Assembly (NCBI GenBank): GCA_964035545.1
Contig: OZ037765.1
Location: 8,442,698-8,506,697 of the forward strand
Reading direction: 5' to 3'
Length of the DNA stretch: 64,000 bases
Source: Bugula neritina
Taxonomy: Eukaryota > Animalia > Bryozoa
The notes under the pieces are model-generated. The model had not been told where the DNA came from and searched no databases. It saw nothing but the letters and a program-made list of their open reading frames with translations. The position numbers were made by a program, and so were the translations under genes. Shown here piece by piece: positions 6,101 through 18,100 of this stretch (its first letter is position 1; each line of letters opens with the position of its first letter).

Positions 6101-9100
6101 CACTGCAAGTTTTCAGCCGAGTAAAAACCCCCCTCATCCAAATGCTGTCGTATGAGTTCCACTGCAGATTGGTAACCATTTTCATCCACCTGTTGGTAAG
6201 ACATGCTTATTAGTACATTGTCATGACAGCATTACAGTTATTTCTTGTTTTATGTAGCTAAACATTTCATCTAAGCCTGTAATTCAAATTGAAATACTAT
6301 AGAATGAATAACAAGACATGCTGATAAACTAAACAAGGGCATGTATCATACACAAAATAAGTTTTGGTATTGAACGATGCATTCAAACTTGATCTCTATC
6401 ACACAAACACATTAGTTTTCACATTAAATTATATGAAACAAGCTGATGCTGTATTTGAAAAAACTAAAACTGGAAAACTTACATGTGAGAGATTTAAATC
6501 ATCAACCAAACATATGAGCTTCTTGTTTCCTTTGGGTACAAAAGTTTTGCCATGTTTCCATTCCAGCTTTTCATTGAGCCGGTCATACATAAGACTGGAG
6601 TCTGTAAACCTACATTAGTAAACATAATAACATTCAACATTGAGTGAACAGACATACTCTGAGACGTTATAAAAATAGCAATAAACCATTAATAAATAAA
6701 CAAACAATAGTCAGACACTGCAACATCACAAGGGTTATAGAATCTAGTTAGTTGTATGAGGTTACATAAAACAGTATTCGTGAATATAGATAAAATAAAC
6801 AGCTTGTAGCTAAGCAACAATAAACATCCCATAAGAAACATTGATTTAACTCACTTGTTAGCACTGATGTTGAGTGCCAATACTTCAGCCACTTCTCCTG
6901 TGCTGACATTTCTGATTCTTTCTTTGATGATTGAAGATTTACCACAACCTGGACCCCCTACCAGCATGACTGGCTTCCCTACATCTGACAGCTGACTCAG
7001 GAGGTAGTAGAGTTGCTGAAATCATTAAAACGTCAACTAATTAAGGCAGCAAAGAAATAAAACAATTAACAAAAAATTTCCAAATTAAGCTCAAAAATAA
7101 TATCGTAAAATAGGAGTTAACAAAATTAGTTTAAGCTATGATGCCAGCAGACGTAGAGAGCTGTCAACAAACTAGTCTAATGTTTACCTTGTTTATATTC
7201 AGTAGGTACTATGTAAAAACAAGCAAATAAACTGAAACTGGATCTCAATATAAATCTCAATTTTATGTCATCTAATTTGTAGACTACTTCAATAAAACAG
7301 TTGCTTTGAATTCACATCGTGTTTTTACAAATAAGCTTATAATAAAAATGTATATAGTGTGTTGTACAAGTTAAATGTATAATTATAGATATAAACACTC
7401 ACTCCATTGGACACTGTGTGAACAAAAGCTTCATTGGGTATTCCAACATGAGCTGTGCCATTGTAAGTGGCGATAATGTTACCCCAATTAGTAAACTCTT
7501 TGGAATCTCCATCAACTGCGTAGTCAAACACCTACAAAAACCCATCTTGCTACAATATCTTTCAAGACAAAAGGCAGTAGTAATACAGCGACACTGAAAC
7601 TATATCCCCATATCTATCTCAACTAAAAGGCATTAATATTGGTCAGTATAATGCTGCTGCTAACTACATACAGTTCCCACAAACGGCCAAGTGATTCGAT
7701 CTTCAAATGTCTTCCTCCACCAATCACTAAAAGCCTCCTGATTATCGTATTCCAAGGTTCCGGCAAACGACCAAATGACAGCAAACGCAAAGTATCTCTC
7801 ATACACTTCTTCAGTCACCTCATCCAGGATAGTAGAGGTCAATGCCTAACAACAGTTTATTTATCATAGTTACTACTTTTTCTGTGAAAAATAATCTTTT
7901 AAATAGACGAAAATTAAAAAGTACGAACAGAGATACAACTTTACCAACCAAGTGTTCAGCATAATCTAAAAGTACTCTGAATACAATTTTTAAGGATCAT
8001 AGTTTGAAAATGCAAAAAGAAAGCCTGAGCATACCTCGAACATGGAGCAGAAGGTAGAAACCATATTCTCTTCAGACTGTTTAACGCATCTGCTGAAGTT
8101 TGGGATTCCTTTAGGTTTTCTACCAGCAACTGGGGGGCTTGTTGCATGAGCGAGGAAATGTATGACTTTAGGTATGTATGCCTCAGCTAGCTCTCCTGTA
8201 GTAGTGAGCCAAGTATGGTGAGGGTTTAGATAATAACAACATATGATCACAGATGACAAATTTACAGTTATATTGATATGACCACCGAGTTAAAAGTTCA
8301 AAAACTAAAATGTTTATAGTTTTTATCCACAAAAAATTGAATAGTGAATTGAATGATTACCTAAGAGTATTTTGAGCTCATCTGGCCGATGATTAAGCCA
8401 TTGTGTCAGTAGCATTTGCCACCCCAGGTCTTCCTTAGTCATTACAAGCAGGCCAACATTAGCCAATATTGCTGGAGTGATGTTTTTGAGAGAATCACTC
8501 TAAAAATATGAAAGGTAATAGCAAGTGCTAAATGAAAGCAGTAAGATTAGGAAATACACTAAAAAATGTTTGAAGAATATATTGCATTATTTTGTAACAG
8601 CGTAATAAAGTATGTGTAATAACTAAAACTTATTTACATGCTTTTAGTAAAACGAACATTTGTTAGCATTGCAATGAAAATTTAATCAATCACAGCATTT
8701 CGTGTTACATACATATTACTATAACTCCACAAGTATTACACAAGTCTTTGCTAAAAATAAACCTTTCTATAAGATGCTGTACATGTTAATACTTTTTGTA
8801 TTGTGTTACTGTCTATGCATATAGCCTTACCTCCCAGATAAACCTAACGTGGCCACTCATTGGAATTCGTTCATTGTTTCCCAAAACTATGGTTCCATCA
8901 TTATGAAGTATGGAGCCCACAATTTCCATCTGAGAGGGATCACATTCTCCATCCAGCAGAACCACTTTTACAACAGCTTTATTGTCTAATTGTGAAGAAG
9001 ATGGTGCCTTGGCGCAGTATTTTCTAAGTATGTGGGGCAGCAGGCCATCCTTCCACTCACTGAAAACAAATTTTATTATAGCGAAAAAAAAACTTCAAAA

Positions 9101-15100: not shown

Positions 15101-18100
15101 TCGCTATTGAGTATACAGCTATAATAAACATGCTAAACATTTATATAGGCCTAGACTACATTGTAACTTGCCAGTTTGAGCTAGCCCCTTGAATACGTTG
15201 TGTAACATAGCACCATCGTATTCACTGTGACAGTTGAACCAGTAAAATGGCCGACCAAGTGCTCTACTAAGCTCGTGTACCGTCTCCAGTCTTCCTGATC
15301 CCTGCAATAAGAATAAATAGTGTATCACATGTACTCTGAACATCACATGTGTTGACGAAGCTGTTCATACAAATTATACATATGAAGGTAACTGTATCAA
15401 ATATATAATGGTTGTAATACATGTTGAGACAACTACAACAGTTCTCAGTGCTAGTGTGCAAACAGTTTAGTAATACTGTTGGCAGGTAAACATCTAAAAG
15501 CAGCAGATACTTGGAAAAAATGTATGTAGTCATGCACAATCTCTCAGTAGAGTGACCACTTTTGGCTGAACAGTAAAAGCTGTAACTTTAATTATTGCAG
15601 TGAGTGCATGTCTTGGTTAGTCTGAATGACTGTCTAATTGAACATTTTGAAAAATTTTGCTTTAGCACAACCAGTTCAACACAAACTATAATTTTGTCCA
15701 ATAAAACACAATTCAACAAGACATGCAAAACTTTCATAGCAGAGTTTCGTTTCGTATAGTTCTACATTTGCATCTTTTGGCCACATTAATCCAACTCAAT
15801 ATACACAACAGTTATTAAAATTGTAAGCCAGCTATTGAATTAAGAAGTTAAAATAATACAAGTATTTTATTAACTGACATATTGATAGAATATACTATTA
15901 CTATCACATTCTACAAGCTACAACAAACAGTTACTAACATGGTAGGTACAGCACTTGAATAGAAACACAGTATAGCCTACCATTGGTCCTGATATGATAG
16001 AACCAAAGTGCTCTTTAAATGCCAGAGCCAGGTTAACAAACACTCTCTCACAAACTGGGCTGATAACTTCTCTGTCAGCTGATCCTTGGTACTCAAAGTC
16101 ATAGTCAAATGTCAGATGGAGACACTGCAGCAAAACAATTACATAAACTTCCACCAAAATGGCAAAATAGATTCATTAAGATATTTCTAAAACATATTCG
16201 TGTATACTTCTACCCTAATGTAGGCCAATTATAGGCTTGCCAATAATTTTACAGAGCATGCATACTTTGACTTCAACAGCTTTTGTATCGGGCAGAAAGC
16301 TGTATTGAAGCTGTGATTTATAAATATAGGAAGAGGTTAGCTTTTCTGCATGTTCTTCTGCTGCCCAGTCATGTAGCCTAAAACAAAAGAATGCTGAATT
16401 TTAGAATATGTTAGATTATAATATTACAATTATTGTGTATATTATACTGCTGCTTGCATAAACAATATTACAGCAGTATAATGTGGACAACATGGTAAAT
16501 TTAGTTGTTTATTTTGTTTCAGATCACTGAATTTAAATACTGGCTGGCTGAAGGCAAGCTTCTGTTAAATTTAAAGCTTTGATACACAAATTCAAGGACA
16601 TTCACAGAAACTTTTAAATTGTTTCACATTAGATACAACAGAGTGACAAAAAATAACTTTGCAAGTGAGGTGAACAAATTTACTTTTTTTAACATAAATT
16701 GACAGCTGTATAAAATGGGTGAGTAAAATTCTGGTTCCATGTTGTCTTGAATGTTTGAAAATTGAAGATTACTTGCAGCCGATCAAAAGGCAAAATTATA
16801 ATTAAAATTAATATTAAAACCCTTATTATGATCAAGCATAGACTTATAACAATAAATAAAAAACTATATAACTTTAGAAACACAACATGTGTACCTTTGC
16901 AGCAAGTCCCTGTAATAGGCGAGGAGGGCTATAAGACTGCCAATCTTGCGGATTTGACTTGGAAAGAGCATGAGTCTAATTTCTGACTGTTCAACAAATT
17001 CCACCTGCTCTTCCTCTTCGTCCTTCTTCAGTATCAGCTGGTTGAACGTGTTGCCCAGATCCATGGTGTTGACTGGCTCTGGAGCACTCGGTTCATCAAC
17101 TGTGAGGTTAGGGTAAACTATTATACTACTACTATACTCTATGTCACAATAAACTTGTACTCTGCATTGCATGACAATAGCTATATAATATATGGCAGTA
17201 ACTATGTAATATATGATAAAAACTATGTACGAGTAATATATGATAACTATGTAACATATGATAATACTATGTAATATATGATGATAACTATGTAATATAT
17301 GACAATAGCTATGTAATATATGACAAAAACTATGTAATATATGACAATAGCTATGTAATATATGATAGTAACTATGTAATATATGACAGTAACTATTTTG
17401 TCATATACGAGTAGTTCATAGTACAAACATCCATAATACAGTTTAGTATAAATTGCACTAATAAGGAATATAAAAAACTGTCAATGAATTAGCATACTAT
17501 GTAATCATAATATACATCTAAGCTGTAAGTGTGGTGATGATAAGAACTTAAAACATCAGTGCATTGCATGTGTTATATGACTATATATAATATGTTTATT
17601 ATTCCTGCCACCCCAGTAGCATTCTACTAGAATCAAACAGCATACTATCATTGTGAGCAGGAGAACCATTCAGTCCCTCCTCCCCAGTCTCCTCTCCTTC
17701 AGCTATGGGAGACTTAGCACCTTGGTCTGTGGTCAAGTCAAACATAGAACCTCTTACAGAACCTAAACACACCAGGGACAGACAACTCATAAGAGGAAAT
17801 GTCAATCTCACACTAACTTATGTGTGCATTTAAACTGTAAACAATATATACAGTGTGAACAGTACCATAATAGACGAAGAATATGATGGTCAGAAATATG
17901 TGTTTATTAACATAAAAGATGGTGCAGAAACAGTTAAACCAAGTTTAATCATAAAGAACAAAAATAAAGAATATAAATAAACCAAAGTAATAAAGTAACT
18001 GTTACAAACTGCATTGAGAAGCTACTAATGACAATTTCACACCTGGCTTAGCCCCTTGTCTACTTTTTTTATCAGCAGTTTGAGAGCCTCCAGCCAACGA

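Follow-up and report, generated by a model that had tools for sequence, protein, structure and literature searches.

The window, a stretch of 64,000 nucleotides from the bryozoan Bugula neritina (contig OZ037765.1, positions 8,442,698 to 8,506,697), carries on its minus strand a dynein heavy-chain gene, which starts at window position 35780 and extends approximately 17.4 kb past the window start, ending at G000:C1:8425344. The gene consists of ordered, stop-free minus-strand segments, in which matches to the Pfam families DHC_N1, AAA_6, MT, AAA_9 and Dynein_C sit in gene order. It was searched exon by exon, and the matches refer to single exons rather than to a joined spliced protein. The features within the window are as follows.

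[quoted passage not shown]
35373..35780, minus strand: first coding exon, N-terminal tail with Met start (beta-type outer-arm PDB matches)
33013..33495, minus strand: tail exon, DHC_N1 (PDB outer-arm beta 8.4e-17; Pfam DHC_N1 5e-21)
31204..31512, minus strand: tail exon, DHC_N1 (PDB outer-arm beta 1e-12)
15981..16124, minus strand: AAA1 exon ending ...IISGPM, first half of Walker A; AAA_6 profile positions 1-40 (RNA joint 15300/15980; GT-AG)
15172..15301, minus strand: AAA1 exon GSGRLET..., second half of Walker A, K to R and T to L (RNA joints)
14177..14361, minus strand: AAA1 exon with Walker B CFNNLN (DE to NN) and altered sensor I AITTNLIK (RNA joints)
13802..13946, minus strand: AAA1 exon downstream of sensor I (RNA joints; AAA_6 positions 149-182)
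13338..13553, minus strand: AAA1 small-domain exon, sensor II GWSLQSLK, R to Q (RNA joints; alignment)
12938..12988, minus strand: alternative in-frame cassette exon, 51 nt, 17 residues (RNA joints)
11638..11826, minus strand: AAA1 insert exon, acidic and proline-rich (RNA joints and loose ends)
10978..11277, minus strand: end of the AAA1 module and low-complexity insert (RNA contigs; AAA_6 positions 233-273)
9296..9481, approximate bounds, minus strand: AAA2 Walker A exon, GPSGCGKS intact
8326..8499, approximate bounds, minus strand: AAA2 exon, arginine finger lost (TPAILANVG)
6854..7021, approximate bounds, minus strand: AAA3 Walker A exon, GGPGCGKS intact
2394..2618, approximate bounds, minus strand: AAA4 P-loop region GEGSPGVTS, without lysine (read directly)
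99..398, minus strand: start of the MTBD, continuing into L005, the site of the Pfam MT match

The AAA1 site and the rest of the head

Hydrolysis of ATP at AAA1 powers the dynein powerstroke, and one Walker A or Walker B mutation in this module ends motility. An earlier, sequence-only reading of this DNA had listed five substitutions at the site (Walker A, Walker B, sensor I, sensor II and the AAA2 arginine finger), and all five are found on the minus strand at the positions it gave. Walker A reads GPM and GSGRLET on either side of a 679-nt GT-AG intron, with the R-L pair at 15292-15287, and GSGRLET is aligned by HMMER opposite GTGKTET of DNAH17/DNAH9. Walker B reads SWVCFNNLN (NN at 14344-14339) and is aligned to a beta-type outer-arm chain that has SWGCFDEFN. 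Sensor I is MAITTNLIKV versus FITMNPGYAGR in both canonical beta-like genes of the same genome, and sensor II is GWSLQSLK (Q at 13419-13417) versus DWGLRAIK in the same two genes; taken alone, the sensor II exon has no match in PDB. The AAA2 arginine finger reads TPAILANVG (N at 8460-8458) versus TPATVSRAG of the Tetrahymena beta chain, an alignment whose E-value is weak (0.033) but which falls at the expected position. The Pfam AAA_6 profile matches the AAA1 exons in the correct order, with scores of 32-35 bits, as compared to mostly >50 bits (about 25-160) for canonical exons. From these residues the AAA1 site is predicted to be unable to hydrolyse ATP. Nucleotide may nonetheless be bound there, because ATP is still held in the degenerate AAA1 of sea-urchin DNAHX (10.1101/2025.01.18.633724).

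Elsewhere in the head, the AAA4 P-loop is also degenerate (GEGSPGVTS, with no lysine, the canonical form being GxGGSGKQS). Coiled-coil exons flank the MTBD, and positions 154-214 of Pfam MT match at G000:C1:8442242-8442433 (E 1.7e-5). Between the exons matching MT 290-340 and AAA_9 11-49 there are extra stop-free segments of AAA5, predicted to be exons of 55, 122 and 70 aa, followed later by a further predicted acidic segment of 163 aa. At the C-terminus a stop-free segment of 250 codons is predicted to add a low-complexity, S/P/K-rich extension of approximately 240 residues, which joins the normal last exon in frame via a canonical 113-nt intron (exon end AAG, intron GTGAGT...TAG, next exon G). 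No Pfam match was obtained with the extension or with the AAA6 segments. Disordered inserts are present upstream of and within AAA1, and in AAA5.

Transcripts, selection and relatives

The gene is expressed as correctly spliced RNA. Two RNA-seq contigs (X1 and X2), which derive from a close sister lineage and not from the sequenced individual, splice 16124-15981, 15301-15172, 14361-14177, 13946-13802, 13553-13338, 11826-11638 and 11277-10978, exactly the exons that had been traced by hand; in the same contigs the intron that splits Walker A, also called beforehand, is removed. Depth is about 500-700 for contigs of exons versus about 14 for contigs of introns. Exon 15172..15301 has a GC donor and is followed by a GC-AG intron. 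The cassette exon (12938..12988) is included in two RNA joints and skipped in one; it is GT-AG-consistent, keeps the frame and contains no stop. Translated exon by exon, the RNA-backed exons are open and their phases agree, and no stop is seen in the traced exons.

Strong purifying selection acts on the gene. A contig of the same close sister lineage, rather than of the sequenced individual (L008, from SRR4020083), is 89.9% identical in nucleotides over 10.9 kb, with dS = 0.146, dN = 0.0071 and omega = 0.048 over 679 codons. Taken by themselves, the AAA1 exons have omega = 0.05, a constraint equal to that on the rest of the gene, and the insert exons of the AAA1 region have dN/dS = 0.175. These ratios lie well below 1.

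The catalytic losses are common to distant relatives. With the Walker B exon as query, HMMER returned fragments of exon size throughout, forming 24 exon-level clusters of relatives, one from the annelid Capitella teleta and the others from Logan and ENA assemblies. The Walker B Glu is kept in none of 21 exon fragments of relatives, nor is it present in the Capitella protein (ELU01783.1, annotated 'hypothetical protein'), which reads GTGKLET and CFNGLN. One relative (L010), 88% identical in amino acids over exon 13802..13946, has GSGRMET, CFNNLN and GWSLQSLK; another (L001) has GSGKRET, CLNNIS, His in sensor II and Ser at the finger (SPAVLSSVG). The AAA2 finger site is the same in the close relative. 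Since the same losses recur in relatives, a five-fold chance coincidence at catalytic positions is not at issue. Together with the spliced transcripts and the dN/dS of 0.048, the losses in distant relatives uphold the proposal of a selected non-catalytic dynein as opposed to a pseudogene.

Affinities among dynein heavy chains

An animal dynein with a very divergent motor domain was catalogued in 2016 by Kollmar as class 13 (DHC13), with a beta-like (class 4) tail, a longer AAA5 and a non-conserved, low-complexity C-terminal extension as its hallmarks (PMC5100056). All three are recognized here, the first in the tail exons, the second in predicted exons and the third in a predicted segment. The first exon (35373..35780) has only beta-type outer-arm PDB matches, aligned from their residues 5-18; exon 33013..33495 matches Chlamydomonas outer-arm beta at 8.4e-17 versus 2.6e-3 for DNAH5, and in general alpha-type chains score 1e-3 to 1e-2 with the tail exons. 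The resemblance to beta chains pointed out earlier thus holds as far as the tail is concerned, where three exons match beta chains best. With canonical beta chains (DNAH9/11/17) the gene shares the tail architecture, N-terminus, overall domain order and MTBD; however, it lacks the catalytic residues of their GPAGTGKTET, CFDEFN, FITMNPGYAGR and DWGLRAIK motifs. An ordinary class-4 beta chain is rejected, as AAA1 has neither GxxGxGKT nor hhhhDE and the Arg is replaced both in sensor II and in the AAA2 finger.

The genome contains 17 canonical and 3 divergent dynein heavy-chain loci. Two of the canonical ones, at C3:31.71 Mb and C1:20.31 Mb, are outer-arm beta loci. A second divergent locus (G000:C6:11.61-11.69 Mb) has an alpha-like tail and no Pfam MT match, and looks like a DHC12/DNAHX-like heavy chain; the third (C5:16.87 Mb) has no DHC_N1 match and no recognisable tail, and its Walker B reads FDNTD. 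The DHC13 assignment is supported by elimination, because the C6 locus is alpha-tailed and without MT and the C5 locus is without DHC_N1. We consider it probable that the gene in the window encodes a class-13 dynein, an old animal offshoot of outer-arm beta with a dead AAA1, this most likely placement being based on the published descriptive hallmarks and on elimination.

By description, the gene and DHC13 have in common the beta-like tail, longer AAA5, C-terminal extension and divergent motor; the description of DHC13 does not include the losses seen here in both Walker motifs, in sensor II and at the arginine finger. Kollmar states that ATP hydrolysis sites were left out of the 2016 analysis (PMC5100056), and it is for this reason that the AAA1 losses are absent from the published description. 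The novelty implied by the sequence-only reading is lessened, because the gene fits a catalogued class (PMC5100056) and because the idea of a non-motile dynein is already established with DNAHX (10.1101/2025.01.18.633724) and DNHD1. The gene family is thus known; the loss of the AAA1 site in class 13 appears to be undescribed.

DNHD1 (Kollmar class 11) is a divergent 'ghost' dynein required for mammalian sperm flagella, functional and under selection in mammals. It is unlikely that the gene is its orthologue in an invertebrate. By description both are divergent heavy chains with a dead-looking AAA1 devoid of Walker B residues: DNHD1 reportedly has many disordered inserts and a poorly conserved AAA1 in which the catalytic residues of Walker B are missing (10.1101/2025.01.18.633724). 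The Walker B loss (CFNNLN) and the disordered inserts would agree with such an origin, although the former is not diagnostic. Against it, the tail is a well-conserved, beta-type DHC_N1, and the long AAA5 and low-complexity C-terminal extension are class-13 marks; moreover the C5 locus, for its lack of DHC_N1 and its FDNTD motif, is a likelier counterpart of DNHD1 than the DHC13-like gene.

It could also be argued that the head still works as a motor, driven by AAA3 or AAA2 or by an unconventional AAA1 chemistry: the P-loops of AAA2 and AAA3 are intact, and the AAA1 exons have the same omega (0.05) as the rest of the gene, suggesting that the pocket still matters. We regard this as quite improbable, given that AAA1 hydrolysis drives the powerstroke and that the gene has lost four independent catalytic elements.

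The degenerate AAA1, the numerous inserts and the aquatic invertebrate host would also suit DNAHX, the alpha-derived non-motile chain of sea-urchin sperm, which is probably Kollmar class 12. DNAHX, which occurs in aquatic animals, is an offshoot of outer-arm alpha; its stalk and MTBD are disrupted, its AAA1 is degenerate and its disordered inserts are many (10.1101/2025.01.18.633724). Its Walker B is kept in the sea urchin and its stalk is folded back, whereas the present gene is beta-derived, has lost Walker B and has a normal MTBD matching Pfam MT; the alpha-type tail without an MT match is found instead at the C6 locus. The identification with DNAHX is contradicted by the tail comparison and we reject it as very improbable. 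A decaying or lineage-specific beta duplicate (a pseudogene or recently relaxed paralogue), to which the very divergent motor domain and the several AAA5, AAA6 and C-terminal segments without Pfam match might point, is equally improbable and is rejected in view of the omega of 0.048, the correctly spliced transcripts with their in-frame alternative exon, the open exons, and the same substitutions in relatives out to an annelid.

A possible partner for DNAHX

The head of this dynein would be a non-motile, microtubule-binding module that retains the linker, a normal stalk and the MTBD, and in which nucleotide at AAA2 or AAA3 may still elicit a response. Its role could be structural or regulatory, within an outer-arm-like complex of two heads, and the beta-type tail would be the part that binds the second heavy chain along with intermediate and light chains. 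The roles proposed previously (strut, brake or assembly factor) are, like the loss of ATPase activity itself, deduced from sequence. The likeliest partner would be the alpha-derived class-12/DNAHX-like heavy chain at the C6 locus. A class-12/class-13 heterodimer was predicted by Kollmar from tail homology alone (PMC5100056). The second head of dynein-X has a canonical extended stalk (10.1101/2025.01.18.633724), which agrees with the prediction from the heavy-chain gene; it speaks against the gene's assignment that mass spectrometry of the dynein sample in the same preprint reports no additional beta-like chain (10.1101/2025.01.18.633724). We suggest, tentatively, that class 13 might consist wholly of beta-derived pseudo-motors and supply the second chain of dynein-X, paired with DNAHX via the tails in a 'shadow outer arm'. 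If true, both heads of such an arm would be without a normal AAA1 cycle.

AAA1 hydrolysis has long been held indispensable in dynein biology, and DNHD1 and DNAHX have recently shown that animals retain 'dead' dyneins for cilia and sperm. The DHC13-like gene would add a third, beta-derived lineage, in which the whole AAA1 catalytic apparatus is lost and yet the gene is expressed and has an omega of about 0.05. It also serves as a warning for annotation, as genes of this kind will get the label of ordinary beta chains. Finally, it gives a testable candidate for the partner of DNAHX, with the two matched genes, the DHC13-like one and the alpha-derived one at the C6 locus, in one small and tractable genome.

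Layout of the gene and its AAA1 site

Ordered stop-free segments with dynein sequence on the minus strand mark out a dynein heavy-chain gene of great length and many exons in the window. Its AAA1 module follows the tail and linker, and the microtubule-binding domain (MTBD) begins after AAA2, AAA3 and AAA4:

35780-35373, minus strand: first exon, Met-initiated, a stop-free segment
16124-10978, minus strand: AAA1 module, stop-free segments
398-99, minus strand: start of the MTBD, a stop-free segment

The gene extends past the window into the next 20 kb below it on the same contig (L005, L002), where the remainder of the MTBD is followed by the second helix of the stalk, AAA5, AAA6 and the C-terminal domain, and it ends at G000:C1:8425344. 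All searches were run exon by exon, so that comparisons for this gene are at the exon level; the Pfam matches fall in the expected order (DHC_N1, AAA_6, MT, AAA_9, Dynein_C). Several K/E/S-rich exons between linker and AAA1 (16864-19317, minus strand) form an insert of about 300 residues; we consider these segments coding rather than intronic because they are conserved in the relative's locus L010, at 56-74% amino-acid identity. After the AAA3 exon and before that of AAA4, a GGN/AGC microsatellite gives a long stop-free segment of Gly and Ser runs (4796-5089, minus strand). Upstream of the gene, the stretches 40279-40618 and 45417-45756, about 5.1 kb apart, have identical translations and enclose sequence of higher G+C (0.40-0.44); they resemble retroelement terminal repeats.

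The sequence-only reading had held that AAA1 of this chain has lost its main catalytic residues, and motif reading and alignments found every substitution it listed at the codon where it had placed it. An intron divides Walker A into GPM and GSGRLET, the latter standing opposite GTGKTET of DNAH17, DNAH9 and the Chlamydomonas beta chain in HMMER alignments, and Walker B is CFNNLN where the canonical motif is CFDEFN. Aligned to the two beta-like genes of the same genome, which have canonical motifs (GPAGTGKTET, CFDEFN, FITMNPGYAGR, DWGLRAIK), the gene shows AITTNLIK for sensor I and GWSLQSLK for sensor II; used alone, the sensor II exon had no match in the PDB, and its assignment therefore stands on the in-genome alignment. 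The AAA2 arginine finger is TPAILAN in place of TPATVSR. As encoded, AAA1 lacks its catalytic residues both in cis and in trans. By direct reading the AAA4 P-loop is also degenerate (GEGSPGVTS); those of AAA2 (GPSGCGKS) and AAA3 (GGPGCGKS) are intact.

Expression, constraint and age of the losses

RNA support comes from assembled contigs of X1 and X2, two runs labelled metagenomic RNA-seq, which represent a sister lineage and match the exons at about 96-97% identity. Introns are omitted exactly in these contigs, which join 16124-15981, 15301-15172, 14361-14177, 13946-13802, 13553-13338, 11826-11638 and 11277-10978; the next exon upstream of the first of these begins at 16266. Introns between the RNA-joined AAA1 exons are GT-AG throughout, with the single exception of a GC-AG intron (14362-15171, minus strand) from the second Walker A exon to the Walker B exon, which is itself supported by RNA contigs. 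Word depth in X1 is roughly 500-700 for exon contigs versus about 14 for intron contigs, and in the DNA-like run X3 coverage is even across introns and exons. Translated in running phase the exons are open throughout; the AAA1 exons are thus spliced in the sister lineage as they had been traced by hand, with the frame intact. An in-frame cassette exon of 51 nt (17 residues; 12988-12938, minus strand) sits after the sensor II exon and before the acidic insert exon; RNA contigs of both inclusion and skipping forms were found.

The GC-AG intron that precedes the Walker B exon also contains a very high-copy repeat (14437-14830), with word depths up to 22,642 in X1 and 82,820 in X3 and with many joints and loose ends, which is probably a small mobile element.

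As reference for dN/dS we used L008, a 10.7-kb genomic contig from a sister lineage (SRR4020083), collinear with 14599-3808 at 89.9% identity. For twelve coding blocks that together hold 679 codons, omega is 0.048 (dN 0.0071, dS 0.146), well below 1 as the claim of selective maintenance had called for; introns diverge by 6-9%. The exons of the AAA1 module have an omega of 0.05 and those of the disordered insert 0.175. Since the AAA1 value is close to the overall one, the dead pocket is constrained like the rest of the protein. Spliced expression in X1 and X2, together with this omega, rules out a pseudogene.

With the Walker B exon as query, HMMER retrieved 24 relatives from 1.8 billion representatives, all exon-sized, 21 of which cover the motif; the glutamate is kept in none of the 21 and the aspartate in one. 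L010 (about 75% amino-acid identity) has GSGRMET, CFNNLN and GWSLQSLK; a second relative's locus, L001 (about 35-45% identity), has GSGKRET, CLNNIS, His at sensor II and the finger SPAVLSSVG; Capitella teleta ELU01783.1 has GTGKLET and CFNGLN. The Walker A threonine is substituted in every member seen, the lysine being retained in some. The earlier reading had suggested examining orthologues; these relatives share the losses, all three lacking the Walker B glutamate. Judged from these sequences, the catalytic losses are old. Spliced RNA, low omega and losses in relatives together support the proposal of a selected non-catalytic dynein.

Class assignment and other divergent chains

Kollmar's 2016 classification recognized three extra animal dynein classes (PMC5100056). 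DNHD1 forms class 11. Class 12 combines an alpha-like tail with the lack of a typical stalk or MTBD, and class 13 is marked by a tail of beta-like type, a longer AAA5 and a C-terminal extension of low complexity. ATP sites were explicitly outside that analysis (PMC5100056). A recent preprint describes DNAHX as an alpha-derived non-motile chain, and DNHD1 as lacking Walker B residues (bioRxiv 10.1101/2025.01.18.633724).

Tail exons of our gene match beta chains best in the PDB (8.4e-17 and 1e-12, with DNAH5 at 1e-3 to 1e-2), its first exon matches beta-type chains only, and its MTBD matches Pfam MT. The predicted AAA5 region holds three unexplained stop-free segments after the MT match ends and before AAA_9 begins, followed later by a 163-aa acidic segment, and beyond the normal C-terminal exon a canonical 113-nt intron leads in frame to a predicted extension of about 240 S/P/K-rich residues. 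By these marks and by elimination the gene most likely belongs to class 13, the comparison with the named classes being by their published descriptions. Its beta-type tail and Pfam MT match set it apart from the alpha-derived DNAHX and from class 12 without a typical MTBD; with DNHD1 it shares the loss of the Walker B residues.

A genome census with Pfam AAA_6 counted 17 canonical heavy-chain loci; exactly three more match weakly, namely the gene studied (probable class 13) and two others, at C6:11.64 Mb and C5:16.88 Mb:

G000:C6:11612885-11650000 (loci L011, L012, L004, L007): divergent heavy chain, weak Pfam AAA_6
G000:C5:16875173-16878396 (loci L003, L006): divergent heavy chain, weak Pfam AAA_6

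In the C6 gene the tail is of alpha type, its best PDB matches being Tetrahymena outer-arm alpha, DNAH5 and DNAH8; both Walker motifs are intact (GPQAVGKTET for A, CFDEVH for B), and Pfam MT has no match. This gene probably corresponds to class 12/DNAHX and is a candidate to partner the gene in the window. The C5 gene, with GTGKTET intact at Walker A, FDNTD at Walker B and no DHC_N1 tail match nearby in Pfam, is possibly the counterpart of DNHD1 (class 11).

The two canonical beta-like outer-arm genes (L021, L022; C3:31.70-31.73 Mb and C1:20.29-20.32 Mb) have almost identical AAA1 exons, and in the C1 gene two adjoining exons match the same positions, 149-215, of the MT profile. On contigs C193, C125, C41 and C165, intronless AAA_6, MT and DHC_N1 matches continue across numerous TAA and TAG codons; such read-through indicates ciliate contigs, with reassigned stop codons, inside the assembly.

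Possible role and partner

The probable class-13 gene encodes a protein that is expressed and under constraint, with a tail of beta type and a normal MTBD. AAA1 hydrolysis powers the dynein powerstroke; with the AAA1 residues gone, the head would therefore be unable to run the motor cycle. Its tail could hold this head in an outer-arm-like two-headed complex, where it could still bind microtubules through the MTBD, and nucleotide binding may persist at AAA2 and AAA3.

A class-12/class-13 heterodimer has been predicted from the tails (PMC5100056). In the preprint, DNAHX is paired with an unidentified second chain with a canonical stalk, but no extra beta-like chain was listed from its mass spectrometry (bioRxiv 10.1101/2025.01.18.633724). 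That our gene is this second chain, in a class-13/DNAHX pairing, is a fit we propose only tentatively. Since the gene probably falls in a catalogued class and the concept is known, its novelty is moderate; literature searches found neither a dead AAA1 in class 13 nor class 13 as the DNAHX partner. The dead AAA1 of class 13 may thus be new, and so may the candidacy as partner of DNAHX that it would give this class.
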